Source of the DNA: Lepidodermella squamata
Lineage: Eukaryota > Animalia > Gastrotricha
NCBI GenBank assembly: GCA_047495785.1
Contig: JBLDXI010000034.1
Coordinates: 496,001 to 560,000 of the forward strand
Length of the DNA: 64,000 nucleotides
Direction of reading: 5' to 3'
The notes beneath the pieces were generated by a model. The model was not told where the DNA came from. It worked only from the letters and a program-made list of their open reading frames with translations, and ran no database searches. The translations under genes and the position numbers were made by a program. How positions within the stretch are numbered: the stretch's first letter is position 1; each line of letters opens with the position of its first letter. Below, in pieces: positions 4,090-45,904 of this stretch.

Positions 4090-5264
4090 CCCCAGGTCAT
4101 ACGTTGATTATATATTTACCACAGGTAACTGAAGTAGAACTCATTGACCGCTAATAACACGGCGTCCATGCGTGACATCCGTCACTCTGAGCGAATACTT
4201 GACACTGAGTCATGGAAGAATGCCAGTCGAGCTATGCTGATTTCTGTCATATCTACCATAGCCTTTACCAAGCACTGCAGCGTATCGGCAGCGGCATTGT
4301 GTTCTTCTCCCCTTCCGGTTTCTCGATAGAGTGTGTGCCGGCCATGATGCCTCAAAGGCTGTAGCCGAGCCTTCTCAGAGAGATATCCTGGGTTCGATCC
4401 CACGATTTTTGATCAGCCCGACTGGGTAAGGCACTTTAAACACGAGATATGGATGCATTGCCGCAATAGCACGTTCAAGTTAGTGATTGTGCGCGTTCAA
4501 GTTCCTCGGTGACTTTTGCACGGCGCATGCGCATAGCGAGATAAGTACGATCTCAGTTGACAATAATTAAAGAGCGAAGCAGGTTTGGACGGAGTTTACA
4601 AGTTAATTCAAAAGAGAGAATCAGAGACAATCAATATTCGGCCGTAACCCTTATTTCTTCCTTAGTCGAATATTTCACTGTCGTTTTGCCGTTGATCCAC
4701 TTTCAGTTTGCCTGAAAAGTCCTGAAAACCTAAGAAACCACACACTATGAGGTTAAACGCCACGAGGAAACTGCAGATAACGTTATTTTTCCACGGTGAA
4801 ACTTGTTCAATTTTCTATGGGAACATTTGCTCAAATTTTCAAAACTTTTCACCGTCGTTTCACCGTTGATGTACTCGCAGTTTACCTTAAAACTGCTAAA
4901 AATATAGGAAATCGCACACTTAAACCCACTCCAAAGCTAAATGGAAGAATGCACGGCAATAGTTTTGACGGCAATGTTAGTCTTTATCATCGAGGATAAT
5001 TTAGGTTAAATTTCACAGAAATTGACCGCAGGTTAACCGTGAATTCACCGTGAACACACCGTAAAATGCCACGTTTTCACCGTAGAAATGCCGCATTCCT
5101 GCCGCTTTTTTCTCCCTGCGACACAGCAAAAAATAACATGGCGCATGGAAAATCGATAACGGCAGTACTTTTCCTATATTATCTATGCATGCTAATATAA
5201 GGCTCATCTCGTACGGTTTTTTATGAAACACCCTGTATGTAGCTAGCAAATTTTCAAATCGCAG

Positions 5265-6982
5265 GATTCGCTAATGGTCAATATCAGCCATGCAAACATA
5301 ATCAAGGTCCTCGGCGTTTTCGAAGGTATGCTACCCAATTGCTGGATCCAACATACTTAATTGTCTGAATAAAGAGGAATATCAAGGTTCTCGCATGAGC
5401 TATTTGGTGATGGAGGTATGCGAGGGTGGAAGTTTCGAAATACTGATCACGAAGGAGACTAGACCCATCCCGGAAATCATGCTTCAAATATGGTCGCGTC
5501 AACTCGTATCAGCTTTGGTTTATCTTCACGGCCGGAGTATCGTTCATCGCAACATAACGACAAGCAACATACTACTTACAGAAGACCGCGGCACAGCGAA
5601 ACTAGCTGATTTGGGAATCATTGAGAAATTAGACATGTAAGATTGAAAAGTAGCGTTCACTCGGTGTCAAGCTTGATTGTCTAATCAGTTGTTCGAAAAT
5701 GACTGCTCTAGCTGAATGGAGGACTTCCCCTCCGGAGGTATGGAACGGTCAACCGAAATCATCTGCAAGTGATGTCTGGTCGCTGGGATTTGCGCTCTTC
5801 AAATTAGCCAACTTCTATGAACCAGTATGAGAATTATTAACCTAAGTTTAGTTTTTTAAAACTCAAATGATTTCCCAGATCGAATCGACATTAGATATCA
5901 CGAGGTAAAGCCGACGAGTTGAATCCAGTGTTCAGTGGTCGCAAGCTAAAATTTTTGATATTTTAGTAACAAACTGAGACAATTTGCCGAGAACCGCGGC
6001 TATTCCATTTCATTCAGCAACTTTGTCATGAAAATGCTCGCCGAGAATCCTAACGATCGACCAAAGTCAGACCATCTTCGCGGCACAATTTATCTGCGGA
6101 TGTCAGCGCCAATGTGGTATAAAAAGGTTCGATTATTTTCCAATTGATCTGAATTTACTCTAATGCATCGTTGCTTCTATTCTCAAGCCAAACCCGCCAA
6201 ACCAGCCAAGCCAGCCAGTCGTTGGAGCCAACCAACAGGATGTTAATAAGGTAGCTGAGAATTATTCCACTATTTATTCAGGCTTTAGTCATTTATGTTG
6301 CTAGGAGCAGCTGTTAGACTGCGTACGCAAGCAGAAAGACCTGTTGAAATTAGCGCAGCTACTGTCGAACACGGATCTCGGTCTTAGCCCAGACTGCAAA
6401 GATGCAGATGAGTGCCCTCTGTTGTATCTTGCTGCTAAGAAAGGCTACAGTGACATTGTGGAAACTCTGGTCAGGCAATTCAAGGCAGATGTTGAAGTTG
6501 TAAACAGAAATGGCGCGACTCCACTGTGGGCCGCCGCCAAGAATGGCCACGTCGAGGTGGTGAAGATGTTGGCTGGCGAGTTCAAGGCCGAAGTTAATTC
6601 TGCCAACAGTGCCCTTGAGACGCCACTGTATGTCGCAGCCAAGAATAACAAACTCGAGGTGGTGACGATGTTGGTTGGCACGTTCAAGGCCGTCGTGAAT
6701 AAGGCCGCAAATGATGGTCGTACGCCACTTTTTATAGCCGCCCAGGAGGGCCACGTCAAGGTGGTAGAAGCACTTGCTGGCCACATAGCCGCCCAGCAGG
6801 GCCACGTCAAGGTGGAAGAGGCACTTGCCTCGGTTAATGATGCAAAGAAAGCATTGACTGAGGCCGCTGATAAGAAACATTTCGATGTTGTCGATATCTT
6901 GTTAACGAAATTTGGAGACAAAATCGATGCCACTGCCAGACACAATGCAATCGAAAAATACTTTTCGGCGATTAATACTTAA
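5265..6982 (+). CDS. Pseudokinase-ankyrin repeat protein, copy 1 (exon 1 lies upstream of the window; about 4 intact ankyrin repeats plus degenerate ones)
   Basis: Exons encode YLVMEVCEGG, VHRNITTSNILL, KLADLG, SPPE, SDVWSLG; ankyrin ORF 6344-6982; GT-AG introns at positions shared with paralogs. Confidence 0.8.
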
Positions 6983-8996
6983 TACTCAGCCATCGGAATA
7001 AATTTGGCGACACTTGCCGGGGTAACGCATAAAATCACGTGCCATCAGAATAAACGCTGGAAATGTTGACAAATGCATACTTCTTTATTATATCCATTAT
7101 TAGTTATGTGAAATGTTTACTCTTAAACATATATTTGTTTGATTTACATTACAAGAAACCATAGATAAAAAATACTGAAGTTATGACACTCGCGCGTGCT
7201 TCCTCTTATGCTTTTTTGCAGTCAAATGCACAATATTGCAATTATTTCACAAATTGATTAAAAATAAAAATCATCCTCTAAAAATTATAGCTCACTACTG
7301 GATTATTTTGACACCCGCTAATATAATTAGCAGGCAGCGATTCCATATGTAATCTAGGGCTATAATTTGGATTTTGTTACTATTTTAGCTCTGTTGCCGC
7401 GAAAAAGCTTGGAAAACCGGCGTGCGACTTGTGTTTTTTTTGCTGAATTTAATTTTTTTCTGATCAATTTTTCGCCCTGGAACTAATGAAAATGCATTGT
7501 TCTCTGTTATTTCTTGCTACAATTTTTGTCCGAACTGAAATGAATTCATACTATTTAGCCTTTACGAGCAATCAATATTGCTCAGCGTTTTACTCTTTTT
7601 TCTTTGTATCATTTCAGCCCATATTTTTGAAGTTGAATGCTGCTATTATGACTGATACCGGGAACATATTATACAAGTATCGGGATGAGTAAATAATCAA
7701 AGAAATCACTTCCTACGATCAGTGATTAGATCCGCGATGAAATTCAGGTTCATGAGTTGATGGGCATGTCTTGAACTTCGGCAAAAAAAACCATGGCCCG
7801 TGCAATGATTTTCGAATTGCCACGGGACAAGCAGGGGTCTGGGAACCCCCGACAAATTTTCGGTTGCAAAACGCTTGTAGAGCAATTAAGTCGAAGTTAT
7901 CCTTCCAGAACCAGGCGACTAAAGATGTGTTCACGCCAAGTGAAACAAATTTGGATAAATATTAGCGAGATCGCAATACTTGGCACGTGAAATCACGCAA
8001 AAAAACCGTAGTGTTGAGACAATTTTGAATGAAAAATATCAACATTTCAGTTTTTCGACGACTAATAACATTCAATTTTCGGAAGCGCGCGCTTAAACTT
8101 TGCCATAAAAGCATACGAAATACGAAATACGAAAAATAAAGGATTATTTTAAAGCTAGCCATAGATTGTTGATTTATTGAGTTGATCAAAAGCCCTGCAA
8201 AAGCGGTTTTAGTGATAAAATAAATTATCTCCTTGCTGAAATTCTCCTAACGAAATTCCGAGCCAATATCAACGCCGTTGATCACAGTAATAAGACAGCT
8301 TTTCATTGGGCCACGAACTGCGATGCGGGTGTTTCCGCTGATGACAAGAACAAAACAATCGTAATACTCGAGCGGGAAAAGTCAAAATAGCCTGCCGTCG
8401 AACATCAATCTAGTGTCTAGTCAGATTTACTCTAAACTTCTCTGGAAACCAAGACTACAACACTTTTCATGTCCTAAATGTGATCCTGTCCTGCAAGTAT
8501 TTGTTGTTTTCCTTATACTTTCGGTTTTTTCTCGGTTTTTTCTCTGCGGAAGTGCGAGACGAATAAACTGTAAACACGTCGCTTAATGTATAACATGCGA
8601 CCTTTAACCAAGACGGCACACGTTACATAGAGATAGAATATCACTTTCAGATACTAGCGAATATTGGCTGGTATGCATAGAGAATAAAATGACCAGAGTA
8701 AGCACTCGAGCTAAAATTTTGATCACCATTATTATAGAAGTGCGTTCTCAAAACGGATATCTCCGTTTTTCACCAAATTTTTCATGCCTATGGAACGCGA
8801 GCTGCTCTTTCACGTGGTATACGATTTGAGGTTGGCAATTGCCGCTCAGTCTTGATCTCCTCAAAATAAATGAAACCATGGCGAACAACGGTTGGGTTGC
8901 CCACCTCAAATCTTATACCACGTGAAAGTAAACTTTTCCATGTCGTTTGAATTGCTGCTTGAAGATTGATTCATCGTACCTTTTACCTATTCTTCA

Positions 8997-16982: not shown

Positions 16983-19900
16983 GCTGCGCGGAACGAGGGT
17001 GCGACGCAGCATTTATGGCAGTCGCATATCACGGTGTTGGTGATATTCTCCTCATCATAGTCACTTTCGACTGCGTAGATCGCCGTTATTAGACAGCCTT
17101 GCATAGGGCTGAGAACTGTTATGCCAGCATTGCTGCCGATGACAAGCGCAAGACTAGCGTTAACCGCAAGCGGCAAAAGTCAATCTGCTCATCATCATCT
17201 GGAAAAATCCTATCGAATGACAATCGAAATACTCGTGGTCGTGATGTTGTAATTGCGTGATTTGTAACTGTTAACAGAAAACTCGACCGAATTACTTCAT
17301 GTCTTAAACTACTCTGAATTAGTCATTTTCACGTCCCGATCGATAGCAGGTGTAATCTTGAGCATAAGCAAAACTATAAATTAATGCGCCGTGGCTTAAT
17401 GAGCCATTCGGGCGGAAGCTTACTTACGGCTCTGAAAATACGGTATAACGAGATGGAAAAGCTCATTTGTTGAACTGCCATTTTTTCCATGCGGTGAATT
17501 GATCGCGCAATTGTTCTCATGTGACGCGATTTCGCCAGTAATATTTTGAGCCTCAGATAATATCAATGCATTCACATTAGCAAACTTTGAGCCAAGATGA
17601 GAGAAGCAATAATAATAAATCGGATATTTGTTATTACAGCGGCTTTCCTTGATAAAAATTGGCATACTTTACTTAAAGTTGGATCGTATGTGTCAACATA
17701 GTTTGTTTCTATTTCCGGCACACTATTATGGCACGCAAGTTGCGACATTCGCCTCGAATCTATTTTTAAAGGATGAACTTTTGAACTACTCATGGCGGCT
17801 ATTTGCTGTTTCTGATATCAGCAACAGCATCATCATCACTGGAAACTCAGCACTAAGAGAAAAACCTGCTAAAAGTTGCGAAAATTCGAAAATTTACAAA
17901 AAATCAGTGGAATGGTTGCCGCCTGTAATATTTATATCAGCTTGTAAGGGAGATGTTTATATGTAAGTGGGCAAAAATTTAGCCAAATCGGCTATGAAGC
18001 TATTTGAGCCTAACATATTAATTTATCTGTGCTAGCTTCTTAACACCAGTTCGGCGTTCCGATCTGAAGAGGAAGGTTCACGGTGGTCTGTGATCTGATT
18101 ACTTGGGGGTTTGACGTTGTTCGAATGAAAATGAAATTACCGGTATGAACTAGCGAGATGAAGCTAGGATGAAGATTCCGTCAGATCCCATCGTAATATT
18201 TTGAGCATAAAAAATTAATTGATCAGAGTGCACACTCACGCTTTCTTCTTGAAACAAAAACTTTTTTTTGCGTGCGCGCATCTTTTTTGAAAACATGCAT
18301 GTTTACTCCTTGTAAATTGTCATACCCATTTAAAATTTCTGATAAGGTGGATAGCTCATTTTCACTGTGCCACTAGTCTCTATTGCAATTGCTATTATAA
18401 GTAGGATACTTCATGAAACAAAAATGTCGGCATGCCGACCAATTGGCTGAAAAGATAAAATCCTGACCAAGCTGATTCTACTGGCACACCACTGATATGT
18501 AGTATGATACACGAGCTTCTTATCGCCGAAGCTTGACAAAAATTGTGTTTATTTCACGCTTTTATCCTGTGTCATATTTCGAAAGGACTATTTTTCGTCT
18601 CAGCCGTAAGCATCAGCTTGTTTAGATTGAATATGAATTCAGGGACGTATCGGTCTATTTCGGAGTTCTCTGTTATTGAAACCTTGCGTCATGCCACCTT
18701 ACGAACATCTATGTTGTGCGAACGTAATAGGAGTCCTGCAGAACGCGTGGTTATAAAAAAAACCAACTTGACAGACCTTGAAAAAACCTTCAAAGGAATT
18801 GCTGAACTTCTCCGCAAAAGAGTGAGTTTGAAGTGCTACCACTTAAGATTCAACATTATAATGAGGATAGTGAAGTTCTTGAATGATAAAGGTGCGATTA
18901 GCCTGGGGAAACGGCCGGAAAACTCCCAGAATTTATAATTGAAGTATATTTTAAAATGGTCGCAGGATTCGCAAATGATCAATATCAGCCATGACAACAT
19001 AGCCAGGATTTCCGGCTGTTTCGAAGGTTTGCAATCCATTTTTTGATACCAACATTAGCTAAAGGTTTTATATCACAGAGGAATTGCAAGGTTCTAACAT
19101 GAGGTATTTGGTGATCGAGTTTTGCGAGGGTGGAAGTTTCGAAAGCCTGATCACGACGGAGACTGCACCAATCCCTGAAATCATGCTTCAAATATGGTCG
19201 CGCCAACTCGTATCAGCTTTGGCTTACCTTCACGGCCGAAGAATTGTTCATCGCAACATAACGACAAGCAATGTACTTCTAACAGGAGACCGCGGCACAG
19301 CGAAACTAGCTGATTTGGGAATCGTCCAGAAATTAGACGCGTAAGATTGACAAGGGGCATATTTTCATCGATAAATTCGATATCCAATATTCAAACTAGT
19401 GGGTCACGAATGACCGCTCTAGCTGCGTGGTACCCTTCCGCTCCTGAGGTATTGAAAAGCGAACCGAAATCCCCTGCAAGTGATGTTTGGTCGTTGGGAT
19501 TTTCGCTCTTCAAACTAGCCAACTTCCACGAACCAGTATGAGAATGATAAATGATCTCAAATAATTGGTTGCTAAGTTTTTTTTTATCTTTTCCAGTTTG
19601 TCTCTACGCCAAGTATACTGATGTGCCGGGGGAACCCCCGTACTGTCGCCATTCGTGTCGTGGAAATCTTTGTTTCTTTGTTTGTATGTATGCACCCATG
19701 TGCACTGCTTGACTACACGCCTACGTACACGCCTACATAAACGCACACCTTATGTGCACACCATGACTACACGATTTGAATTTGAATTTGAATTTGATAT
19801 TTTGATATTGTATGGGATTTGTCTCCCCTGTTTATGTGATCTCAATGAACAATAAATATTTGAATTTAGAATTTAGTATGCACCCATGCGCAATGTGTGT

Positions 19901-22577
19901 GTAAGGCTTGACTACACGCTTACATAACGCAATCTGCAAAACATGACTACCCGCCTACATCACTCCACAGCCCACAGCCAAAAAGGAAGTCATTCCAACC
20001 ACTAGCCACTCGAACCTTAAATTGCCGGGTAAACCTTTGCGCACGGACGGAAAGTAATTGCTTCTTGCATCGCGATTTTTAGTTCACACTTCACACAGCG
20101 CTCATATCATACAAGAACATCATACAAGGCCACTTGATACGAACCAAACCGTAAACCTTAGCCCAAGTTCATGCCGTCGTGAACGTTTGAATTTCGAATA
20201 GTGTAAGCAATGAAGTGGTGCAGGACAGCTTGTTCAGAACCCATGTGTTTTTCCGCAGCTTTTCTTGCCGCTTGCCGAATTTTTACGAAGTCTTACGAAA
20301 GTTTGCCGTGAAAGCCTCGTAAAACTGCGGCAAAATGTGCATTACATTACATATATGCGGGGCAGTAGCTCGTTCGAAACTGTGTGCTTCGATGCTCCGG
20401 AGTCAACGGCAAAATTTCGTAAAAGACTTCATAAAAACGTCTCCGTCTCTAATGGACGATCAGCATGTGTCCGAATCGATGGCAGATTCAGTGTCTTGTG
20501 TCTTCTTAGTCTTGCAAATCAAGAAAGAATTCGACTGCTTCTTCATACAGTTCATCGCCTAGTTCCTGAGCACGGGGGTCATCATTTGCATTGCAGATGA
20601 TGACCCTCGTGCTCTCTCCATACTGATATCCGGACTCTCACTCGCCAACTCTTGCTCTTCGATCGCTGTTTTTCGGCGAAACTCCTCAGCCGCGTCCTAA
20701 CCCAAATAGGTAATATTCCTGGTGGCGATCTAGTTTCCGCCGAACTGACTCTAATGAAGGGCAATTTTCCAATAGACGAAGAGCAGGAATAGCTGAATCC
20801 TGTTTGTCAAGAAACTCCTCCGGGTCTCTGAAACTATTATTGAGCAACAAAGCAAGCCGCGAATAGAGCTCTAGTTTATCAGCGTCTGAATCAAATGAAC
20901 GATAATCTCGAAGTCGAGGGCCGTAAATCTTAGCGACATGTACTTCTCGCCGCAAATATTTCTCAAATCGTATTTCTCAAATCAAATACGTCCTTGTTGG
21001 TGTAACGCTCCTGGAACTCAATGACATTTTGTGATTCGCTCAACTCGACAAACGAATTCGGTCCAAGAGTGGAGTGTGTGGAGAAACACGAAAGTGTATC
21101 GTTGACTCCGGAGCATTGAAGCACACGGTTTCTGAACGAGCTGCGAGCTGCCCCGCACAACTTCATTGCCTACGATCTCTTGCCTACGAGTTTGTTGCGG
21201 CAACTTTTGCTCTTTTTCATCGTATACTGCCGGCTATTATCGAGCATTTCCCGTGCTCTCATATAAAAACCAAATCTGCCGTGATTTTAATTTGTCGCGA
21301 GTTTACGAGTTTGCTAAAACAAAATTACTAGGTGATCGGAAGCAGCTGATACATTATGTGACCACCCGCAAGTAGGGTTTCGACAAACGGTTTTGATTGG
21401 TGGGCGATCTAAACCGCGGCAAATTCAAACAATGATTTTTTAATTTTTAAAATAATGAATTTTTTTTTTATTTCAACTAATAAAACATAATCTTTATATG
21501 TAACTGTGAAAATTTTGCGGCAACTGGTGATTTTGAAATAGCTGGCGCCACCTGGACTTGCCAAACAGTAAGGGATTGAAAGTTAAACCCGCCATTGTGA
21601 AATCTGACAATCGTTGTCGATCACATCAATTTTTACTTGCATGACTTTGGTACCTTTTGCAACTTTTACAACTACAATCATGAAATCAAACGTTCAATAA
21701 ACAGTTTGAGATTGTTACTATTCTCAGTTTAATGTTTCTTTTTTTTTGGCCGCCCAATATTTTTGAAGGCGCATGACATAAACCTGCATCACTTGACGTG
21801 GTAGTGATTCAGGAAGTGCCGCGCACGTCATCCTCACTATTCTCTTTAGAAGCTTTTGTCGCAATTCCATTGAGTCTGCCGACAGCGCATGGATGTTGAT
21901 ACCCTTCATCAACAAGGGGAGAACATGTGTTGATGTGACTAGACGAATGAATTTATAGTTACGAATCATTGACTTTCGCATTTTAAACTGTTACCATGTG
22001 CATAAGTGGTTAAGTGCCCCACAACTGCCACAAATTTTCGCTCAAAGACCTCGAAATCTGCTTCTGGGTCGCCAGCTAGATCGTTCTTCTCGATGCGCTC
22101 AAAAATTCGCCCCGTACTTAGCAACAGCTCGTCACAATTGTTCAAAAATGCTCGCAAGTCAGTCCGTCTCTTCAAAGATATATGACCATTCTCTAGCTAT
22201 TATCGTTAGAGCAAATTAGCATACTTTTTCCTCAAACCCTCTCTCCAGCGCCTTACGTCGAACCTCATCCAGCGTCCAATCTTTTCGTACAACAACATTA
22301 TGCTTTTGCAGCCATCTTTCAAATACTGCGATGTCCCGGCCATACAAGCCTTTAACCATCTCGACCTCCCAGTCTTCACCCAGGTATTGCATGAGGGATC
22401 CATTCTTTGCAAGGGTCTTCAAAGCCTGCGAATTGTAAGTTCTCACTCATGCTCACTTATAATTACTTGAAAATTACCTCAGTTGTTGCGTGGTGGTTCG
22501 CTCGCTTTATCGCGATTTTCTGATTCGCTTCTTTTGGCGTCGAGACAGTTAGCTTTTTACTGCTGCGCTTAATAACA

Positions 22578-23115
22578 CATTATGCTTCCGTATTGCAGGA
22601 TCAAAGTCCACGTTGTCACGTGGTATGAATAGCTAGTTCTGAGGCGTTATTTTTTTCGTTGCTTCGTCGTTTCGTCGTTTCGTCACTTCGTCATCTTTTA
22701 CAAAAAAACTGACGAAAGAAAAAAAAACGGGGAAAAAAGGAGGATTCGAACCCGGAACCTTAAGGATCAGAACCATGGATTTAAGCCACTATACAATAGG
22801 AGGCTTTCTATCTACAACCGGCAAAAAACGCTTTAGTGTAGCGTTCGTTTAGTATATAAACATGCCGAACGAAGATGACTACCATGACCCAGCACTATTG
22901 CTCAGTGGTTTCGCCTTGTGCGTCATAACCCAATGGTCCCGGGTTCGAATCCTCCTTTTTCCCCGTTTTTTTTTCTTTCGTCAGTTTTTTTGTAAAAGAT
23001 GACGAAGTGACGAAACGACGAAACGACGAAGCAACGAAAAAAATAACGCCTCAGAACTAGCTATTCATACCACGTGACAACGTGGACTTTGATCCTGCAA
23101 TACGGAAGCATAATG
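22578..23115. mobile_element. Foldback MITE related to RAG1-like element 2, with tRNA-like units
   Basis: About 180-bp near-perfect inverted arms starting CATTATGCTTCCGTATTGCAGGATCAAAGTCCAC; 2-bp TSD CA; excision restores the host transposase frame. Confidence 0.9.
22891..22960 (+). other. tRNA-derived (tRNA-iMet-like) Pol III unit inside the MITE
   Basis: A-box-like TTGCTCAGTGG, CATAACCCA anticodon region, B-box GGTTCGAATCC, followed by a T-run; acceptor stem not intact. Confidence 0.55.
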
Positions 23116-25039
23116 CAGCGACAACGTTTTCATAGGCTGTAGTTAAATGCACCTCGCGTAACTTCGTCAGGATCTAAAGTTATGATGATTATATTGTTTT
23201 GTTTCAAATGTCTTATCATACCGCTATAAGTTCACACTCAGTTATGTTGAGTTTGAGGTGCAAGTCACAGGGCACGATCTCAAATAGGTGCGGTGGTAAC
23301 TGAATTAAGGGCAAAAATGTGGCGTGCCAGCCTAGTTCGCATCGTTCGCGTTCATTCAAGTTTGCTAACAAATCTTCCACCAAATCGTAGCGCCTGAGTT
23401 CGCCTTCTGTACCTGTTACAAAGTTTTTCGTGCAGAACAAGCAGCCGAAATTAGCACTATGATGCCCGCATGCTAATAGCCAAACCATCATTGGATAATC
23501 GCAGCAAAGTATCAATTTAAAGTTGTATTTTTTCCCGTCATGTTCCACGCCGTTCAACACCCATTCCACAACCTCGTCGACTACTGGGCGAATATATTCG
23601 CGCGCAGTCTCGTAGCTTTCCTTGCCCTCATAAATGAGCATCTGGAATTCTTCTTCCAGGCCAATTTTATCTTTTTTATCAGCGAAGCACATAGTAGCTT
23701 GTACCCAACCGTCACTGACGTCTGTGCGTCCGGGTGTGCCATCAACTTGGAAGCGTATTTCATTGATTTGTTCTGTGCTCAAATAACCGATTTCCACCCA
23801 TTTCGGCAGATATTCGCGCAAGCTAATGCGAACGCCTTTTTCAGTTTCAGCATCTACTCAAAGGACATTTTTATCTGGAATGTGTATAATTCATAATATT
23901 TACCGCTTGGGACCTTCAGTATATCTAGCATAGTTGCCAATGATCGCCGCGCTTTACGCAGCGTTCGTCGCGAGATATTCTCATTTCCGACCGTTTTTGC
24001 AATTGGCAATGCCGCTCTCGAAGAAACAATTTTATCTGCCATCTCTTCCGCGACCCTGTTTGCGATACTTTTTTTAAATATTATTTATGCTAACTCATAC
24101 TCACCTGTTGCACAAATCATTTTTGGTGATTTCCACGTTTTCACCTGGTGGGACGCTAACTGATACTTCTCCAACGTCTTTGAGCCGCATCGTCATTGTC
24201 ATGCTTTCCACTTCCTGATCTCCCAAATAATGGCGAAAAGCCGCGCTGCTTTTAACACCGTCCAGTATCACTTTAATTGCTTCCTTGGCTCTTGTCACCT
24301 TCTGCCAGCGGCACAGCGTGGAATACGGCTTGCGTCCCACAAACTTCAGCTTCGGCCTGATAACCCGCGTGTAGCGCAAAATTGCTGGTTGTCCATTTAC
24401 ATCTTGTCCGATAGGAATATTATTATTCGGTACATCCATATTTTACCTGATACCTAAACGCAAAATCGATTTTAGTAATTTTATTGCTATTGATAATGAC
24501 ACAAGACGTCGACATTATAAGCCACATCCGAATTGCCCTCTGTAGGTTTCTGTCTAGCCGTAGAAAGCTTCGACGATTTCGCGTGGACAACTCTCGCGCT
24601 GCTAGCATTGAAGTTATCTCATCGCGTCGTAGTTTTATGAGACATTTTTCTCGGTAGTTTCTTACTCATCTATCAATTTTTCACAAAATCTCGCATTAGA
24701 TTTGGATCTATCCGCCGTCGAATGGTTATAAGCTACGAAGAAATGTGCGATGTTTGCGGCGACTTGTCAGGCCTAAACCGACAGTTTTTAGTTAGCGATT
24801 ATCCTTTTTTTCTCAGATGGTATCGCACGTGAGTTCTTTCAACGTACCTGAGCATTTGTTAGTTGATAGATCAAAAAATTAGGGACGAATCTAAATCAAT
24901 TGGAGCTGTTCGTATTCGCTTCCGCTACCGCCAAATTTAACTTACCTCTTCAACTTACTTCATCATCTCTAAATCCATCTTTAAATTAGTTTGCATTGCA
25001 ATTCTTTAAATATTCGCCGTTTTTTAGAAATTTCGCCTT

Positions 25040-25841
25040 ATTTTATCAAAATATGGTCAAGCTAAAAGTTTTTTGCGGCTCCGTCGCAAAAATTATTATA
25101 TTTCCGGCGGCCGAACTTGATTCGCTGGTTTCTCTTCGCGGAAAAATCGGCGCCAGTTTTCGCCTCACCAGCGATTTTTCACTGTCGTACCGGGACGGCG
25201 ATGACGACTTTCTCCTCACAGAGGAGTCTGAGCTGGTCGACGCCATCAACGGCCAGGCGGAGCTGCGGATATCTGTTGGCCCGCCCGTCCCGGCAGCAAT
25301 CGACATGACGATCGACTTCAACTCGACCAGGACCTGCAAATCCCCAGTCAAGTCGGTGTTGAAGTCACCTGGGCGTGTGTCGTTTGCGCCGCCACTTGGA
25401 TCTGCCCCGACACCCGGCTCCGCGCCTACTTCAACTTCGCCCCCGAACCAGCCTGTATTGCCCCGGGAATACCAGGCCTTCTTGAGCGCCCTCCTGGCCA
25501 GCAGCCAACGTCAGCCGGCCCCTCCGGCCAGTCGCCATTTCCCTGACGAACAGCACGCCGCAACGCCACGCCGTTCGAAGCGGCCCGAAAAAGGGGCATC
25601 CGGGCTTCCCGCACCTGGAACACGTTACAGCGACGCAGAATACACGGCGTTCGATCGCTACCTCGACTGGCTCGGCGAGCATGATGCCATCTCGTTCGAG
25701 TCGATCGACGACTTCGCCCTTGAAGACGATTTTGATTTTTGGCGGTGCTTCGGAACCCGTTCGCATTCCGCGGTACTAACGAAGCTGACGGCCTACCGCC
25801 GCGAACGTCGCGTACCTGACGCCACCCGCCGCAGGCGCTGA
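25040..25841 (+). CDS. PB1-like domain, Pro-rich linker and C-terminal Myb/SANT-like domain; second gene of RAG1-like element 1
   Basis: VKLKVF...FSLSYRDGDDDFLLTEESEL (PB1 Lys and acidic OPCA-like motif); RYSDAEYTAF...FGTRSHSAVLTKL; intact GC-rich ORF (start approximate). Confidence 0.65.
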
Positions 25842-28528
25842 TTTATTCGGTCAAAAGACAATTTAATTGTAATTATTTCCACCTAATTTGAGACGTTCTG
25901 CCGGAGAACAGCCAAAATATTCATTTTTATTTGAGACATTATTTTAGAAACAGCTATATAAACGATAGTTAGAAACGATATGAATTTTTGAAATATAAAA
26001 TTGAGGAATTTTTTCCGAATATAGTAATTACGGTATTAGAGTATCTATTAGAAGAGAAGTAAAAAATCAAAAACAATGAATACTCTGGCTGTTTTCTGGC
26101 GGAGCGTCTGAAATGATTAGAGGATTATCTAAATGCGCAGAGATCTGCATTTTATATCAAATCTCACTTGATGATTAATTTATCTCTCAGGTCCATTATT
26201 TCGTAGTGCACCGACTTACTGACTGGCGTCTAGCTTTCAATGTTCAGTTTTTGTAGTGACACAGTGTCAGTTTGCTCATCAAAAATTCAGATTATGACAT
26301 TTACCTCGACTTGAATGATAATCGGCCGTAAGCCTGATGACTTGGCAATAAAATGATATAAAATGATATAAAATTTGAGGGATTTCAACTAACAGTTCCG
26401 TGAAAATTTCTGCTACTTCTGAAAATTATGTGTGGTTGAGTTTCTTTGTTGTTTTTATACTAGAATGCCTGGATATAACCTGTGATATCGGTTTTCTCGC
26501 GTTGTGCCTCCGTTATTGTTAAACTTACTTGATAATGCGCTTCACATGGTGCGTATCACTCAAGTAGATAATATCTTTGTCTTTCATGTGTTGCTTCCAT
26601 CGATTTTTCCAATCCTTACGATTTTTTATTGATTATTACGCACGTGCATCTCGAGGCAAAAAACAGCTCTTATTTTGAATAAAAAAATACAGTTTGAATC
26701 ACCCGCGTTTATTTGAATGAACCAATAGGAGAAAGGCTTTTTTCCCGCCTTTAAAGTGGTCACATAATGTACTTTCCGTTTGGTATGACAATGGGGCGAA
26801 ATCTTTATGCGTGGCACTAGTCTCTAACAACGTCGCCGCTGTTGGCTTGAAATGATGATGCAAGTTTCGGGCTGACTTCCACGCATCAATTGCGTCGACG
26901 AAGTCTCATTTTTTGACCTGGGACCGAAACACGGACCCTTCTCCTTTCGGCGACGGCGTAATAGTTGTCGACTCGTCAAGCTGATTGTCGACTACAACTT
27001 ACTGATAATGAAGTAACACGTAACATGTGACCTCTTCGACATAGGTATCGATAGCTCGTGCTTTGTTTTTTATTGTTACTTCTACTCATAAATAACAATC
27101 TTATCCACGTGTAAACATTAAACTGCTTGATGTTACGGAATTTAGTAGGAATTTACGAAAATGTGAACAATGGGTTCCCCCGGCGCTACTGTAGCAGCTA
27201 CGCTGCTGCTGTTGCCAATAAACTTATGAGTTTGACACAGCAGCCTCCGACTGAAATCTATAACATTTTTAGTAATAACATGAAACCATTTGACGAGTCC
27301 CGCGGTTATTCCGATGAATTTCGGGAATTTGTTATGTCTATGCTCGCTGAGCTTCCTAGGATTCGCCCGACGTCTAGTCAGCTTCGATTCAGTGCATTTT
27401 TGCTGAATTCGGCACCTATGCGGTATACAAAGGTATGATCGATTTTCCCCACCTGACATCTGCATTCTTGCAATCATGCATGTTCCTTTTATTCTTCAGC
27501 CAGACCAAACATCCGTCGAACCCAAGCCAGAGATTGTTAAGGTAGCTACGAATTATTTTACACTTGATTCAGGTGTTAGTAATTGAAATTACCAGGAGTT
27601 ATTTGACTGTGTATGGCCGAAGAAAGATGTTTTGAAATTGGTGCAGCTACTGTCGAATAGGAACCTCGGTCTTAGCCCTGATTGCAAAGACGAAGAGGGA
27701 TTTCCACTGTTATACCATGCTGCTCGAACCGGCTACACCGAAGTTGTGGAAACTCTTGTCAGGCGATTCAAGGCTGACGTTGAAGTTCGTACTGCAATTG
27801 GCCAGACACCACTGTATGCCGCCGTCCAGTTTGGCCACCTCGAGGTAGCGAGGATGTTGGCTCGCGAGTTAAACGCCAATGTTAATTCGGCCGATAATAG
27901 GGGATGGACGCCACTGCACTTCCCCACCTACATTGGCCAAGCCGACATTGTGAGGCTATTGGCTGGCGAGTTCAAGGCCGACGTGAATATTGCCGAAGAA
28001 CATGGCTTTACACCACTGTACGTCGCCGCCTTCACTGGCAATGCCGAGTTGGTGCGGATTTTGGCTGGCGAGTTCAACGCCGACGTGAATTCTGCAGATA
28101 AAGATGGCGTGACGCCATTGTACATGGCTGCCCATAACGGCCACGTCGACGTGGTAGAGACGCTAGCTGGCCAATTTAAAGCCAACGTGAACGCTGCATG
28201 TAATAATGGCAAGACGCCGTTGATGGCAGCCGCATATGAGGGCCATCACCATGTTGTTGAAGTTCTTCTTACAAAATTCCGAGCTAATATCGACGCCGTA
28301 GATCGCCGAAATAAGACAGCCATAGATTGGGCCACGAACTGCAAAGCTGGTGATAACAAGAACAAGACTATCGAAATACTCGAGCGGACGAAGTCAAAAT
28401 AGCCTGCCGTAGTACACCAATCTAGCCTCTAGTCAGATTTACTCTTAACTTCACTGGAAACCAAGATGAAAAGTCATGATCATCGTTTTTGGCAAAATGA
28501 TTGAAACACTCGCGCTGGTGTCGTAATC

Positions 28529-29715
28529 GGATCATGCCCACTTGCGCATTCCCCTTTCCGCACGAAATTTCCCAGTTGCGCATTCCCCTTTCCGCACGTG
28601 TAAATAATAATAAATAACAATAACAGCACGAGCGAATTAGCGAATTTTTTTAATCGCGCGCACGCTTCTACGAAAAGTCACCACATGTTTTCTGTTCGTA
28701 TATGTGACACCTGCTTAATCTGTTAGATCAACAGCATTAGCAGCACTCAAGTATCAGAATACCTATAAAACGACGTAGAGCTACAGCTAAGGTAAAATTA
28801 GCAAGAAAAAGGGCAATAAACGCCGACACCATCATTACTACTGACTAATGAGCGCTGTTCTTTAATCGAAATCGGTCTATTGTTAATAGCTAATAGTGTC
28901 TAGTCCTTCGACACTTCGTGCTCTTCTCACCGTGATATCAGCTAATTGGCCGCCTCAAAATCCGTTCGACTTAAATTTTTCGTCACCCAACAGCCGGGTA
29001 ACTCACCTGTGGCAGCTGCTAGAGAGGGAAAATACGGAATAAGCGCGGCTCAGCAGTCTGGTCCTAGTCAACCGTGGATACTTTGGTCATACCTAGTAGC
29101 GAAATTCTCAAAATTTCGAAATTCATTCATTTTTCAAATGACTTTTGACGGATTTGTTACCTGCTCATCTCGACCTGAAACAATTTGAAAACGGCTAATT
29201 GAAACTGGTCGCCTAAATTTGAAAACCCGGTTTCACAATTCCTCAGGGATCAATAGGGATCAATAGAGATGCCAAATAGGGTCGCCGGTTTCCGAGCTTA
29301 CCGTTCGGTCAAGCTAAGTCCACACAGCGAAATGACGCAAAATGCTATGTCCATCGTGTATCCTACGCTGAAATGGATATCGCCATTGGAAAGAGCGGGG
29401 TCGATTACCTCGCAGGTGACGGTTTTAACTGGTAATTTCGATGTGGAGCGGTTCTCGTAGACCTCGTGGATGTAAAATACGACAACAAAACTTAGCAAAA
29501 TTAGTAACTGATGAGGCGTAATTTATTAGATGGATGGCCTTGCTCTTGATCTAGCCTCTTTTAACAGGATTTGTCAAATAACCCTTAAGGTGGCATATTA
29601 TATTATAATTAATTTGGCCGTGCGGAAAGGGGAATGCGCAACTGCGACTATTTATTCTATCAGCTCGTGCGCAAAGGGGAATGCGCAAGTGGTAATGCGC
29701 AAGTGGGAATACACC
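28529..29715. mobile_element. Non-autonomous DNA transposon with GG..CC ends and 8-bp TSD
   Basis: TSD TCGTAATC (28521-28528 and 29716-29723); inverted CCCACTTGCGCATTCCCCTTTCCGCACG repeats. Confidence 0.75.
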
Positions 29716-30100: not shown

Positions 30101-32034
30101 TGGCTCACAAATGAAAGCTCTAGCGAGGCGGAGGACTTCTCCGCCTGAGGTATGGCACGGTGAACCGAAATCACCTGCAAGTGATGTCTGGTCGTCGGGA
30201 TTTGCGCTCAACAAATTAGCCAACTTCTATAAACCAGTGTGAGAATGTTCTTGAGTGATTACTTACTAAGTTTTATCAATTTCCAGTTTGTCTCGACGCC
30301 GTTAAATTTAGGTAATGTTACGAGTTTGCCACAGTTGTCACAAGCAGGAATTTGACGGGGAACTCCGGTTGTCGTGGGGCGTCATCCGTTCGGTCGGTCG
30401 TCCGGTCGTCGAAAAGCATATACCCCTGGGCCAAGTATATGTTAGGGCTATATGTAATTATATGTTCACATAATTTTACATAATGGACAGTTGATTTTCA
30501 CATATTGGACACTTGATTTTTTAAGTAGGAGCACATATTGGACAGTTGTCTATTGTTCAGACCCGTGAAACTCATGAAACCCAAGAAACCTGAGAAACCC
30601 AAAATAGCTTTATTATTCAAAATCAAACAATCTATTGGAAAAGCTGGGGCGGCTCGAAAATCTGGCAGCATTCACCCCTGATACCGAGAAAATCGAGCAG
30701 CATTCGGCCCCAATTTCGAGAAAATCGAGCAGCATTCGGCCCCAATTTCGAGAAAATCGAGCAGCATTCGGCCCCAATTCCGACAAAATCGAGCAACATT
30801 CGGCCACAATTCAGTGAAAATCGAGCAGCAGTCAGCTCCGATGTCGATAAAACCCTGAACTCCACCGGGACAATTGCGAAATCCGAGCAGCAGTCGCCCT
30901 CAATCTTGAGAAAATCGCGCAGCATTCCTCTTGGATCCTGGAAATTGTCAAAACGGAGCCGTATTCGTCTTGCATTTCGTACCATTCCATCACCTTCGTT
31001 CCTGGCTCGAACTGGTTCGACGACACGCTTCCTCGTACGGGATCGAAACCTTGATTGAGCTTGAGATCGACAATAACCAGATCGGCGAACTAGCTGCCAT
31101 GAGCCGAATTCACTCGCCTGGTTGATTTGATGAGCCGACGGTTCAAATAGCTCGAGCCATTGTGCGATTCTTCATCGTAGCAGCGTGCCAGTTTGACGCG
31201 AAGATCCGGCGGCAAAAAAGCGAGTGAAAATCAAAACGAAAATCGACCGAATGAGCGTTTGATTTAAAAATGGCGAAAAGCTCAGTTTTTGATGAAAAAT
31301 TAAGTTGGATGTTTTATTTTCCCATTTTCCATGATTTTTTAACCTTCGCAACGTGGGGCTAGGTATTTCAACGGAGCCCTGACACTCTGTAGATGCTACT
31401 ATGCCTCGGGGTATATGCAAATATTGGACTTAGAGTCGTAAATATGTTGAAAAACCTCACATAAAACGTCCTCGCCTGCGGCTCGGCCATTATATGTTCG
31501 GTTTTTCAACATATTTCCTCCTCTATGTCCAATATATACACATAAGTAGTGAGTGTTAAAAAAATGAATCCCATCGCCTGGAGGGTAGGATGTGCTAGTA
31601 AGAAATTTCTAGCAAGGCACGAAAGCAAGGTATACATTTATTTAATTGAATCGTTAGGCTTCAATTAAAGATTTTAATATTGCGATTTTGTAAATATCTT
31701 TTTCGGCCGATCCAATCGCGCTGACCTGAGCTTTCCGAATATGTATTTGGATTTAAAATAAATTGAGTCTAACAAGGTGAAAATCGCTGCAGTTTACCTG
31801 CGACCGGTCATTTTCTAGTGCGTAATGGTGTGTGGCTGAAAAATGGTGATTTAATTTGTGTGGGCGACCATTTTTTGCACATTTTTTGCCTCGATGATAA
31901 ATTATCGATTTTCGTGTTTGCGTTAACAGCATTTTCCTTGACTGGAGTCTCCATAACGTTATTCCTCTCAAGGATGTTTCGGCTGATGACAAGCGCAAGA
32001 CTATCGAAATACTCGAGCGGGCAAAATTAAATAG
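30101..32034 (+). pseudogene. Fragmented pseudokinase-ankyrin copy 4
   Basis: TSPPEVWHGEPKSPASDVWS exon at 30101-30237 and terminal ..TIEILERAK fragment near 31975-32034, separated by insertions. Confidence 0.65.
30416..31418. mobile_element. Non-autonomous element with short TIR GCATATACCCC and an internal 30-bp tandem repeat
   Basis: Inverted termini; (GAGAAAATCGAGCAGCATTCGGCCCCAATTTC-like)n at about 30655-30830. Confidence 0.55.
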
Positions 32035-32970: not shown

Positions 32971-33130
32971 TTAACAGAGTTATCCCATCATTTGGGAAAA
33001 CTATCGAAATGCTCGCGCTGATGAATCGGCTATCTAAGACGTAATAGCTTAACCAAGATAATTAGATTACCAAACCAATGCTCGTCAATAATCGAACCCG
33101 GTGTTCTTGCCGATTTTTTTATCATCTTAA

Positions 33131-33971
33131 TGTTACGACCGAAGTCCGAAAGCGACCACATCGCGATCTGGTCGACCAGACCCCGACGTGGCTATAGCCG
33201 ATTTCCACGTCGCGCTGTGGTCGACCAGGATGCGACGGGCCTGCAATCTCTCTTATCAAACACCTTTGTCGGGCTTCGGCTCATAGGTGTCAACCCAGGT
33301 ACGGTGGGCTCCAAATAGAGAACAATGGACGCGCGCGCGCATTGTCCCGCCGCGCTCTGGCTCACACTTCTTGCGCGCGAGCCAGAGCCCGACCGCGCTT
33401 ATTGACTAAGTTGATTGGCCGAACATTTTTTTAATTAATATAAATTTACCAAAAAATGGTGAAGTCACAAGCTGTATGTCTCACGCACTGTAGTCAAACG
33501 ATCTACATTCAGGGCCCATTAACTGACTCGCGATTTTTGTTTCCGCTTGTTTTGTATTAATAATCGAGCCATTTTTCAAATATTCTGTTATTTTTGTGAC
33601 TCAAGCTGTGGCCGCTCAGGGGCTAATATACACTAAAATACACCATTTCTACTTCGTTTCCAGGGAGATAAAAAATAGAATGACTAGTAAAAAGTTGAAA
33701 TCAAACGTAGTCGGGCTCTGGCTCGTGCGCGCACGTGTGAGCCAGAGCGCGGCGGGACAATGCGCGCGCGCGTCCATTGTTCTCTATTTGGAGCCCACCG
33801 TACCTGGGTTGACACCTATGAGCCGAAGCCCGACAAAGGTGTTTGATAAGAGAGATTGCAGGCCCGTCGCATCCTGGTCGACCAGAGCGCGACGTGGAAC
33901 ACGAGGAATGCCCCGTCGGGGTCTGGTCGACCAGACCGCGATGTGGTCGCTTTCGGACTTGGGTCGTAACA
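33131..33971. mobile_element. Foldback MITE with ~265-bp arms, TGT..ACA ends and TTAA flanks (Ginger-like)
   Basis: 33131-33395 is the reverse complement of about 33710-33971. Confidence 0.75.
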
Positions 33972-35252
33972 TTAATACATACTGCAGAGCCGGGGAAACT
34001 TGGGAGCATGAATAAACTACCGTAGTTACCGAAATACAAGCCTGGGCGGCACTACAAAGAACATCGAAGTGCCGACAAAGGGTTGCCGCCTGGGCTTCTA
34101 TTTCGGTAACTACGGTAAGCATGCAAGAAGTAGATCTCCTGATATCAACGTATAGACATCGATTTTGTACATCAAGCCTGTGGTACTGCCAAAATGATAC
34201 ACCAGAAAAAATATCACCCTAATTCATATACTAAAAGCATGAATTTAGTTTCGGTATCTGAATCATGGGGAAAAAAGTTGCAAAAATTGATGGGCACTAA
34301 TTTATATTCAGATAATCGTGAAGTGCTCAATTCCTGCCCCCAATTTATAATAAAATTGGAAACTGTAACAATTCAAAACTCCGAAATTACGAAATAACGA
34401 GAAACCCTAGAAACTCAGAACGCCGCGTTGATTGCGCAACAACTCTCATGTTGAAACAATTTTGGAATAAAATTTAGTTTTATGCAAACTGAAATTTTTC
34501 GAGGCGAAGTTATAGCGTTTTAGCACAGTTCCATCATCCATATTCTTCTGATATGGCATACTTTGCTGTTGATGCGACGGTAGCAGACTGTCCGGAGCTG
34601 GAGCCCGACGATAAACAGTCGTTGATAAGCCGCATGAAAGGTTTTATTGGTAATTTTTCCAGTTTTTTCCGACTAAATCCACAATTCCAGAGCTAAACAT
34701 TCGATCAACCTACTGAAGCGAGCCGATTACAGATGTATCATGAACGCATGGCGATTCCATTGCAAGGAAATTTAAAAAAAATTTAAATGATTTAAAATTA
34801 AACTTTTTTTTTTAAATGATTGCCGGTAGAGTAAGGTAAAATTAATTATATCATTTAAAATGATTTTTCTCTCTCATCAAATTGTCGAATATTATCACAA
34901 ATAATTTAAGGCTACTCTGATAATTAAATTGGGGCAGTTGATCGAAGGTCATTTACTGTTATCTCCTCATTTTTTAATTATCTTACACCGCCAAATATTT
35001 ATCATAAGTTTTCACAGAAATATGATAAAAAACACCATTTATCGTAATTTTTAGCATAATGTACACACCTTTATTACGAAAAAGCTATATATTATTGCAC
35101 ATATTATATGTTACGACTGATTGTTGAGTTGATATCCCATGGCGTAACACGTTTTTAGTACCGAGAAGAAGGGTATATATACCTACGCCGTGAATTGATT
35201 TTCATCCACTTCATCATCATTATTTGAATAACTATCCGATTTTCATCAATCA

Positions 35253-37412: not shown

Positions 37413-39296
37413 TTCGACTGTCTGATAATGAGAAAATCAGCAATTTCGAACTTTGAAAAATTCGAACAATGACGTCCCGGCTTGCGATTGTGACGTAATT
37501 TACATAGCGATTTGCGTAATCGCCTACTGATAAATTGCAGACATCGATAAAAAATTAAAATTAAACTTAAATTATCTGAAAATTAGCCCAACGTTATAAT
37601 AATTTTCGCTACCTTAGTGACAATTATAGTAAATAAAATATAATTAGGATAACAAACGTTATAATAAAGAACGTACGATCAATTGCCCCATTGGCAGTAG
37701 CCTTCTGGAAATTATATTCACAATTTTATTGACATTTTATCCTCCTTAAAGAATACAGTACAGAAATTTGAACCATAATTTTCAGAAAAATTGAAAAAAT
37801 TACATTAATAGTTATCAAGTACCTATGTCACTTGTTAATGGGATTAAAAAAGTCTGGAGAAATTTGGTCCAACCGAGTAAAATAGCGAAAATAACCGAAC
37901 CAGTTACCACCGGGGTAATCCCTGGTAGAGATTTTTGTTTTTTTTTTTCGGAGAAATGAAAAATTTACCGGAGAAAACCCGGAAAATCCTTATGGTAACT
38001 GGTTGGGTAATATTCGGTATTTTACCCAGTTAGACAAAATTTCTCCGGACTTTTTTAATTCTTTTAACAACTGGCATACTTGATTATCATTTTCGTATTT
38101 TTTTGAATTTTTCTAAATATTTTCTGGCCGTTAGATGTGAAGTGGTCTCTCATTTTAGAGTTTCTGAGCCCTTTTCTGTGTATCTATCAGCCTATGACTA
38201 TCACTATCAGCCGCGGCAATGCAACGCCTGCGATGTAAACTTCTTCTCATTTAAAATGTTTACAATTTTGAGATGAGTAAATCGAGTACGGCGAGTTCAG
38301 ATATGAACGATTTACGAATGATATACCGTAAAATATCGAATTGTCAAAGCTACTCGACCTATATTTTTGACGACAATTCTATATTTCAAGTTAACGACAC
38401 AGCACTTGTGTGTTCTTTGAATTGAAGACCAAGGCTTTGTGATAAAATAAAAGATTAACTTATAGGGACTAAAACTAATTTTATGACAATTGAGCAACGG
38501 AAATCCGGCAGTAGAATAGTCGTTTGTTCAGGAGACGCCACATCATTTAAATGGATTCGAAATCGCAATAAAATAAGGCAGGCCGTCACAGCCACAAATA
38601 CCCTAAGGAGATAACGCGACAAAACAGCAATTTTTCAAATTGCGACATAACAGCAGATGCATCTTTCAAATAGAAAGTTTCCGTAGTTTTGTCGCGAAAT
38701 AACCAATTTCGCTGTTTTGTCGCACTCGCTGTTCTGCGGAGTTGCTGTATTGTAGCCGTAAAATGGTCTACCTTGCGAGAGTAACGCTAAGACCAAGATC
38801 CCGTCAGATCCCATCATTCAAACTTGGGTCATTATGTGTATTTTTGAGCGCAGCTAATTTTGATTGAGAGGTAAGTTAACCAATGAATTGACAAATTCGA
38901 ATGTATTTTGCAAATACCGACCACTGAGTTTGCTCGTTCACGGTCGTGATGCGATTCTTGCATCTTTATCTTGCAAAGAATTATTCTACTCAAACCAAAT
39001 TTTTCGCGTTTTTTCTCTGGAAGTGTAAGGTTGCAAGTTAAATGAACTTCAGCCAATTCTTGGAAAAGATAAAACATTACCCGGACGCCTCCACCAGCAC
39101 GCCTCCTCAGAGATAGAAACACATTACTTACTCCGCATCCATGGGTATTTGATGATGATAAGGCAAGCTGCTTATCGCCGCAACCTGATAGCAATTGCTT
39201 CTACTTACTGTCGCTTATTTAAAGGTTTATCCATAGTTGCCTATTTTGCGTGGTCTATTTGTATTCTCAGCAGTCAAATTCAGCCCCGGATTGAAC

Positions 39297-41699: not shown

Positions 41700-42239
41700 G
41701 CTGCGCGGAACGATGGTGCAGCGCTGCATTTATGGCAGCCGCATATCGCGGCCATCACGGCGTTGGTGATATTCTCCTCCCGAAGTTCCTAGTCACCTTC
41801 GCCATAATAACGCAGCCTTGCATAGGGCTGAGAACTGTTATGCCAGCATTTCTGCCGATGTCAAGCGCAAGACTAGCGAAAAACTCAAGCGGGAAAAGTC
41901 AATCTGCCCATCATCTGGAAAAATCCCATCGAACATCTTAGTCTGGATTTGCAGTGTCAAAGTCCACTTTTTTTGCTGTTCAATGCGTCATGGTGGTGGC
42001 GGTGGTCGGAGCGGTCGGAGCGGTCGGAGCGGTCGGTGACCGTGGTCATTATTAGCATGAAAAAAATTGTTTTTCTCATCTTCCGTCATTTATTGGATTT
42101 TCTAAATAAATAAAAAGAGCCTTTTTTGGGGTAATAAATTACTATCATACAAATATGAATTAAAATCTTTGAATCAATCTGAACATTTGCAGAAGTAATT
42201 ATTATTGATTCTATAGGTTTCCAGAATTTCTTTCATCAC

Positions 42240-44175: not shown

Positions 44176-44342
44176 AAATATTTGAAGTACCTAGAAACTG
44201 TGTTTCATTTGATAAATAAAAAGTTTGAACTATGTCATCATGTCATCATTTTATTTCCGCATTAATCTTTGTCGACGTAGCTTTATTTCTTCCTCAACTT
44301 TGATTTATCATAGGCAGGAGGCAAAAGATCACAGCGTAACCT

Positions 44343-45412: not shown

Positions 45413-45904
45413 GAAAAAAAGAATATTTAAATAAGTAAATAATGGGGAAATAATGCTCCCGAGAAATTATTAGATGATAAAAAATTCCCGACCTAATCGA
45501 CCACCCCACCGCCCCGACCACACATCATGAAGCAAAAAATGTGTGGACTTTGACACTGCAAATCCAGACTAAGATGAATGACAATCGAAATACTCGTGCT
45601 CGTGATGTTGTAATTGCGTGATTTGTAACTGTTTACAGAAAATTCGACCGAATTACTTCATGTCTTAAACTACTCTGAATTAGTCATTTTCACGTCCCGA
45701 TCGATAGCAGGTGTAATCTTGAGCATAAGCAATACTATAAATTACTGCATCGCGGCACAATGAGCCATTCGGGCGGAAGCTTACTTACAGCTCTGAAAAT
45801 ACGGTATAATGAGATGGAAAAGCTCATTTTTTGAACTGCCATTTTTTCAATGCGGTGAATCGATCACGCAATTGTTCCCATGTGACGCGATTACGCCAAT
45901 ATTA

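Follow-up and report, generated by a model that had tools for sequence, protein, structure and literature searches.

The ends of RSS and Transib elements consist of a heptamer led by CAC, a variable spacer of 12 or 23 bp and an A-rich nonamer; they show 12/23 asymmetry and go with a 5-bp duplication (PMC1131882). Heptamer positions 1-3, CAC, are essential (PMC1131882). Transib and ProtoRAG ends are built from a conserved element, a variable spacer and a further conserved element (PMC1131882, PMC8289069), and the ProtoRAG ends are asymmetric, with a TR1/TRsp/TR5 organization (PMC8289069). More broadly, transposon ends are generally laid out as a cleavage tip with a binding part farther inside (PMC6382973). 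Within the CACTA-Mirage-Chapaev-Transib (CMCT) clade, 5'-CA..TG-3' termini and duplications of 2-5 bp are the norm, and the PlavakaB elements have CATCA..TGATG termini and a duplication of 2-3 bp (PMC12730594).

Here, we analyzed a 64-kb stretch of the Lepidodermella squamata genome (64,000 nucleotides, referred to below as the window), which contains a non-coding MITE, an autonomous transposon (element 2) and a divergent relative of the latter into which the MITE has inserted (element 1). A first-pass annotation of this DNA had read the 34-bp ends of the MITE and of element 2 as an RSS-like signal, made up of a conserved tip, a largely divergent 12-nt spacer of fixed length and a conserved internal block. 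The coordinates of the features on which our analysis is based are collected in Table 1. Most likely, the ends of the MITE and element 2 represent two branches of one known kind of transposon and not a new recombination signal in the style of the antibody genes.

Table 1. Mobile elements of the window and the parts of their ends, numbered from the first letter of the window.
Feature	Position	Strand	Remarks
MITE	22578-23115	.	538 bp, non-coding, hairpin-like; sits inside the element 1 transposase exon
MITE left 34-bp terminal repeat	22578-22611		CAT-TATGCTTCCGTA-TTGCAG-GA-TCAAAGTCCAC
MITE right 34-bp terminal repeat	23082-23115	-	exact reverse complement of the left one
MITE tip CAT	22578-22580	+	common to element 2; fits the clade-wide CA..TG terminus (PMC12730594)
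MITE 12 nt separating tip from block	22581-22592	+	3/12 match with element 2
MITE inner 19-bp block	22593-22611	+	TTGCAG-GA-TCAAAGTCCAC; putative binding site
MITE subterminal tandem array	22654-22692	+	(TTTCGTCG) x4.9, 77-115 nt from tip; mirrored at 23001-23039
Left target-site duplication copy	22576-22577	.	CA; flank reading and 22575-to-23116 joint
Right target-site duplication copy	23116-23117	.	CA; flank reading and empty-site contig
Element 1	19618-27191	-	divergent relative hosting the MITE; putative ends TA/C + 6 nt + GCCGGGGGAACCC
Element 2	41934-45576	+	3643 bp, autonomous two-gene transposon; transposase on + strand, partner gene on - strand
Element 2 left 34-bp terminal repeat	41934-41967	+	CAT-CTTAGTCTGGAT-TTGCAG-TG-TCAAAGTCCAC
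Element 2 right 34-bp terminal repeat	45543-45576	-	34/34 identical to left
Element 2 left subterminal array	42004-42036	+	(GGTCGGAGC) x3.7, 71-103 nt from tip; 4 GGTCG motifs at 71-98 nt
Element 2 right subterminal motifs	45489-45519	-	GGTCG x3, mirrored orientation, 58-84 nt from tip

The MITE is short and non-coding (longest ORF, ≤47 aa), carries terminal inverted repeats, is flanked by a target duplication and is present in many copies, as is characteristic of such elements. Its two 160-nt arms (22578-22737 and 22956-23115) show 100% complementarity and are accompanied by a second arm pair of 40 nt with 90% complementarity; a single long hairpin is the predicted fold (z = -45 versus shuffles). 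Ends of the MITE type begin CATTATGCTTCCGTA. When Logan contigs from four public runs were aligned to positions 22200-23500, 119 contigs of run X3 aligned to the MITE with identities of 85-100%, and diverged MITE pieces were also found in organism B (runs X4 and X5) and in a biofilm metagenome (X1). Loose contig ends accumulated at 22579/22580 and at 23115-23117, which indicates that other copies terminate at identical tips. The MITE family is mobile and multi-copy. The core of the MITE contains two diverged, outward-facing segments (22737-22800 on the minus strand and 22890-22957 on the plus strand) with a tRNA T-arm-like GGTTCGAATCC followed by T runs. A tRNA reading of these GGTTCGAATCC-like segments was discarded: ARAGORN detected none, and Rfam returned no tRNA match at E values of up to 1.

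The insertion of the MITE could be followed at base resolution. A 3206-bp contig from run X3 (organism A) joins position 22575 straight to position 23116, skipping 540 bp, with two ambiguous letters at the joint and zero other differences across 761 flanking bases. This contig therefore represents the exact empty site, and the MITE insertion comprises 538 bp plus a 2-bp duplication. As had been proposed from the letters of this stretch, taking out the MITE together with one CA reopens the minus-strand reading frame (..YENVVAVIKRSSKK..) inside the transposase gene of element 1. In X3, this site of element 1 was assembled solely in its MITE-free form, with 100% identity over 761 bp; the insertion is therefore either polymorphic or specific to one among several copies of element 1. 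The MITE copy at 22578-23115 is a very recent insertion.

Run X3 also contains 0.92 of the sampled words of element 2. The reading of its transposase ORFs identified the motifs QVDG, CCDY, C(2)C (RCVIC) and H(4)H (HLLGCH), followed by an E (SIE) 20 residues past the second H; the D, D and C(2)C residues are kept in element 1 and in seven metagenomic fragments. Using an AlphaFold model of a 288-aa piece of the transposase (of moderate quality: pLDDT, 66.7; TM, ~0.4), Foldseek returned RAG1, BbRAG1L or HzTransib for all of the best 46 PDB matches, at E values from 1e-5 to 4e-3. A search of the PDB with the sequence of the element 2 transposase yielded nothing relevant, and its Pfam match to Transposase_21 (E = 0.005, 16.5 bits) lies below the cut-off of 28.6. 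The matching catalytic motifs and the RAG1/Transib-type fold uphold the description of element 2 as RAG1-like, and together they place it in the CMCT clade. Other properties expected of this clade are present as well. The termini of the MITE and element 2 are CAT..ATG, conforming to CA..TG, and the duplication is 2 bp, within the range of 2-5 bp. For this duplication, which the first-pass annotation had assigned to both elements, the empty site provides proof at the MITE, while at element 2 it rests solely on the AA/AA flanks, a match that would arise by chance in 1 of 16 cases.

The gene that accompanies the transposase of element 2 lies at 44343-45412 on the minus strand. A long, acidic stretch of low complexity makes up the N-terminal ORF of this partner gene. 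The partner gene is conserved: over 90 aa, its C-terminal ORF shares 29% identity (E = 4e-11) with the neighboring gene on metagenome contig L032. The first-pass annotation had called the partner Myb-like. Pfam showed no Myb/SANT domain in either part of it: the 118-aa C-terminal ORF had no Pfam match at E values of up to 10, and the 245-aa N-terminal ORF produced low-complexity matches only at E values of up to 1. BLASTP detected no similarity between the partner of element 2 and the partner ORF of element 1. The transposase cores of the two elements are 36% identical.

To judge from database searches, the element 2 transposase family is rare in public data. An exhaustive HMMER search with the 288-aa transposase ORF recovered 7 fragmentary relatives among 1.84 billion representatives, and a protein word search with the same ORF gave 1 match. 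The contigs of these relatives (L001 and L029-L037) contained neither a complete element nor a block-like motif with up to 4 mismatches. On L032, an ENA metagenome contig of 7132 bp, the region 4070-7131 harbors a relative of element 2 whose transposase is 44-56% identical in pieces and which has the same convergent partner gene (29% identical, E = 4e-11). L032 and L035 break off at the same base within the partner gene; a search with the cut partner-gene fragment returned nothing. Viral contigs contained no relatives of the transposase. They gave 14 hits to the block in 5 distinct phage sequences, which were dismissed as chance matches, none of them having CAT upstream. Scans for the block followed by N8-16 and ATG gave 13 single hits in JGI metagenome contigs and 12 in bacterial/archaeal genomes, which is the chance level; the spacer lengths of these hits were spread over 8-16, they had no inverted partners, and the genome hits fell in records with bacterial or archaeal titles. 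No family member was thus found in the JGI and prokaryotic collections; the genome of Lepidodermella squamata is not part of them, and the result does not extend to it.

The two types of ends agree at 23 of 34 positions. CAT is common to both at positions 1-3, as are 17 of the 19 positions in the block (positions 16-34), while 9 of the 11 mismatches fall within positions 4-15 and the other 2 at positions 22-23. This clustering of mismatches has a P value of ~0.003 (200,000 permutations; a post hoc figure). The two 12-mers at positions 4-15 match at 3/12 positions and are unalignable even with gaps, and past position 34 the MITE and element 2 have nothing in common. With ≤3 mismatches, the block TTGCAGNNTCAAAGTCCAC occurs 4 times in the window, precisely at the four element ends, against 0.23 in shuffles; its 11-nt core with one mismatch again identifies these four sites. 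The anatomy that had been described, with 34-bp ends, a conserved tip, a divergent 12-nt stretch, a conserved block and equal spacing, is thus accurate in both sequence and coordinates, and the ends are symmetric, left being equal to right in the MITE and in element 2. Farther inside, both elements carry subterminal arrays at similar distances from the tip but with different sequences; for comparison, the background rate of the GGTCG motif of element 2 is ~0.9 per kb per strand.

The features that define RSS and Transib ends are absent from the MITE and element 2. All of the ends (4/4) start with CAT in place of the CAC cleavage tip. There is no conserved 7-nt heptamer, as positions 1-3 alone are common and positions 4-7 read TATG versus CTTA. 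The inner block, TTGCAGNNTCAAAGTCCAC, is not an A-rich nonamer, left and right ends are the same in both elements with no 12/23 asymmetry, and the duplication seen with the MITE empty-site contig is 2 bp, not 5 bp. The ends of the MITE and element 2 are not members of the RSS/Transib signal class. What holds of the RSS-like reading is the layout of tip, 12 nt and block, the symmetry of the ends and the RAG1/Transib-type fold of the enzyme. Since a tip with an internal binding part is a common layout of transposon ends, the only distinctive point of that reading is the neutrality of the 12-nt stretch.

A poorly conserved spacer of fixed length is what the pairwise comparison of the two end types (n = 2) appears to offer, with 12 unrelated nucleotides of equal length; within a lineage, these nucleotides are invariant. 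The left and right ends of element 2 are identical at 34/34 positions, including the 12 nt, and directly after position 34 the identity falls to ~60% with indels. Were the 12 nt of element 2 drifting like the adjoining DNA, 12/12 identity would have a probability of ~0.002. In the copies of the MITE (contigs 85-100% identical), the variants listed are dense at 22695-22996 and sparse in the terminal ~120 nt, where those of the right arm are just 23044 and 23079. Among the variants listed, which are the best-supported ones (34 variants and 46 loose ends exist besides, and alignment clipping near contig ends conceals variation at the tips), the stretches 22578-22609 and 23082-23115 contain none, and organism B has one at 22610. 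The claim of the first-pass annotation that the 12 nt form a sequence-tolerant spacer was drawn from one pairwise comparison; the identical ends of element 2 and the MITE copies with no listed variant speak against it. The putative ends of element 1 (19616-19637 and 27172-27193) read TA/C-TGATGT-GCCGGGGGAACCC and TA/C-AGTAGC-GCCGGGGGAACCC with 4 differences in the 6 nt that separate tip from block, a hint that this stretch may drift in a relative. The element 1 block GCCGGGGGAACCC has two sites only in the window (0.02 expected by chance), and its distance from the tip is 7 nt, as measured from putative tips, versus 15 nt in element 2. Two end types are too few to tell lineage-specific constraint cleanly from a tolerance of any 12 nt.

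Collectively, these findings are best accommodated, at slightly better than even confidence, if one CMCT cut-and-paste family includes the MITE and element 2 as two sister lineages, with 34-bp ends that keep a catalytic tip and an ancestral 19-bp block and with 12 nt that are constant within each lineage. Such a family would be marked by its CAT..ATG termini and 2-bp target duplication, and its functional end would span all 34 bp of the terminal repeat and consist of three parts. The CA(T) tip would be contacted for cleavage and strand transfer, as in the whole clade. The 19-bp block (positions 16-34) would be an ancestral high-affinity binding site kept in both lineages and bound by a DNA-binding part of the transposase or of the partner protein. 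The 12 nt, being constant within a lineage and different between lineages, look like a lineage-specific recognition part and not a neutral spacer. Since the MITE is gene-less and recently inserted, we infer that it was moved in trans by an enzyme of the family, which could be that of element 2 or that of an unseen, closer autonomous relative. The ends of the MITE and element 2 are identical at just these 23/34 positions, their subterminal arrays are different, and no autonomous element with MITE-type ends was seen in the data examined. As the subterminal arrays differ too, we lean to the closer relative, which by this sequence comparison seems slightly more likely than the enzyme of element 2.

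An RSS/Transib-style signal, in which a cleavage tip, a fixed 12-bp spacer of nearly irrelevant sequence and a binding block are read by the element 2 transposase, which thus moves the MITE, would account for the equal 12-nt spacing, for spacers with the 3/12 identity of random sequence and for an enzyme with a RAG1/Transib fold. Transib and ProtoRAG ends offer a precedent in their succession of conserved element, variable spacer and conserved element (PMC1131882, PMC8289069), the two putative ends of element 1 likewise differ between tip and block, and the MITE has inserted recently, with an intact element 2 sharing both genome and run with it. We nevertheless consider this explanation unlikely. 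Element 2 has the same 12 nt at its left and right ends, whereas the adjoining internal DNA has diverged, the MITE copies have no listed variation in the 12 nt, and the ends lack CAC, an A-rich nonamer and asymmetry and go with a 2-bp instead of a 5-bp duplication; in addition, the subterminal arrays of the MITE and element 2 differ, and the pattern comes from n = 2 end types. Similarly improbable, in our estimation, is a RAG1-fold lineage outside Transib/RAGL with a true tripartite signal composed of a 3-nt tip, a strict 12-bp spacer of free sequence and a 19-bp binding block. If it did exist, one enzyme could move elements with unrelated spacers, and the heptamer-spacer-nonamer logic would be older and wider in the CMCT clade than the RAG/Transib branch, in a symmetric form with no 12/23 rule.

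The restriction of the similarity to a block with sharp borders, and its absence from the 12 nt and past position 34, could also reflect a chimeric end, in which the outer 15 nt or the inner block was gained by recombination or repair between unrelated elements, so that the similarity would be uninformative on recognition. The exactly equal distance from tip to block, the common tip and the 2-bp duplications made by both elements speak against such an origin, which we rate as very unlikely, and a chimera able to transpose, as the recent insertion and many copies imply, would need recognition anyway. A chance match of the two ends has nothing but the small sample in its favor. It is negligible given the agreement of 17/19 positions at an equal offset from four independently defined tips and the 4 observed block occurrences, all at ends, versus 0.23 expected.

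Several other repeats were noted in the window. An additional CAT..ATG inverted-repeat element of 1165 bp at 28533-29697 has TTGCGCATTCCCCTTTCCGCACG twice near each end; its flanks, AT versus CG, show no matching 2-bp duplication, and part of its outer motif recurs in the right flank. Hairpin-like inverted repeats at 33127-33975 (241-nt arms, 95%), 37824-38078 (86 nt, 84%) and 31412-31544 (65 nt, 78%) are probably other MITEs or foldback elements. TA-flanked inverted repeats in the style of Tc1/mariner were seen at 48673-48874 and 54514-54550, at 34018-34117 and at 453-5237; they include TACCGTA.. ends and also TACAGGGTG.. ends that are 4.7 kb apart.

The evidence is chiefly a record of how the ends of a rare and sparsely sampled CMCT lineage are built: a tip, 12 nt, a 19-bp block and arrays in subterminal position. 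The 2-bp duplication and recent activity of the lineage are proven as well, results that are helpful for annotation and unsurprising in kind. Should the enzyme read the tip and block alone, the system, which is small, young and apparently active and comprises a two-gene element of 3.6 kb and an abundant MITE of 538 bp, would constitute a simple model. It could then reveal how RAG1-fold transposases gauge the distance from binding to cleavage, and whether RSS-style spacing predates the Transib/RAG branch.

Set against known systems, the ends described here resemble RSS and the terminal inverted repeats of Transib and ProtoRAG in having conserved elements on the cleavage side and farther in, separated by what appears, from two end types, to be a less conserved stretch of constant length, and in the fold class of the enzyme. 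They depart from them in having CAT and not CAC, 3 common tip bases and not 7, a block that is not A-rich, no 12/23 or 27/31 asymmetry, a 2-bp and not a 5-bp duplication, and no RAG2-like partner; moreover, the Transib pattern was drawn from 21 families, whereas that of the MITE and element 2 comes from two. The likeness to the CMCT clade extends to the CA..TG termini and to a duplication in the 2-5-bp range, and the CATCA..TGATG termini of PlavakaB are close to the CATCT..AGATG of element 2. Unlike other CMCT members, element 2 has a transposase that is very isolated in sequence, and the 19-bp inner block is specific to the family of the MITE and element 2.

Bipartite inverted repeats are also found in insertion sequences and in Tc1/mariner elements, where the terminal 2-3 bp are there for the chemistry and an internal part for the binding of the transposase; their layout is like that of element 2, but their enzymes belong to a different superfamily. 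En/Spm (CACTA) elements combine a short terminal inverted repeat with clusters of subterminal repeats bound by an accessory protein and make a 3-bp duplication. Like En/Spm, element 2 has two genes and mirrored clusters of short motifs located 58-115 nt inside each end. Unlike in En/Spm, the MITE and element 2 have different motifs, the duplication measures 2 bp versus 3 bp, and binding by the partner protein is putative here. These differing arrays, viewed in the light of En/Spm, cast further doubt on element 2 as the natural partner of the MITE. MITEs and autonomous elements may form pairs that are alike in little beyond their ends, an example being Stowaway with the Osmar mariner-like elements. 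In the same manner, the MITE described here is a non-coding, multi-copy element that resembles a coding element in the terminal repeat only and would obtain its transposase from trans. It differs from the Stowaway/Osmar case in that the terminal repeat itself is just 23/34 identical, with one contiguous unrelated stretch.
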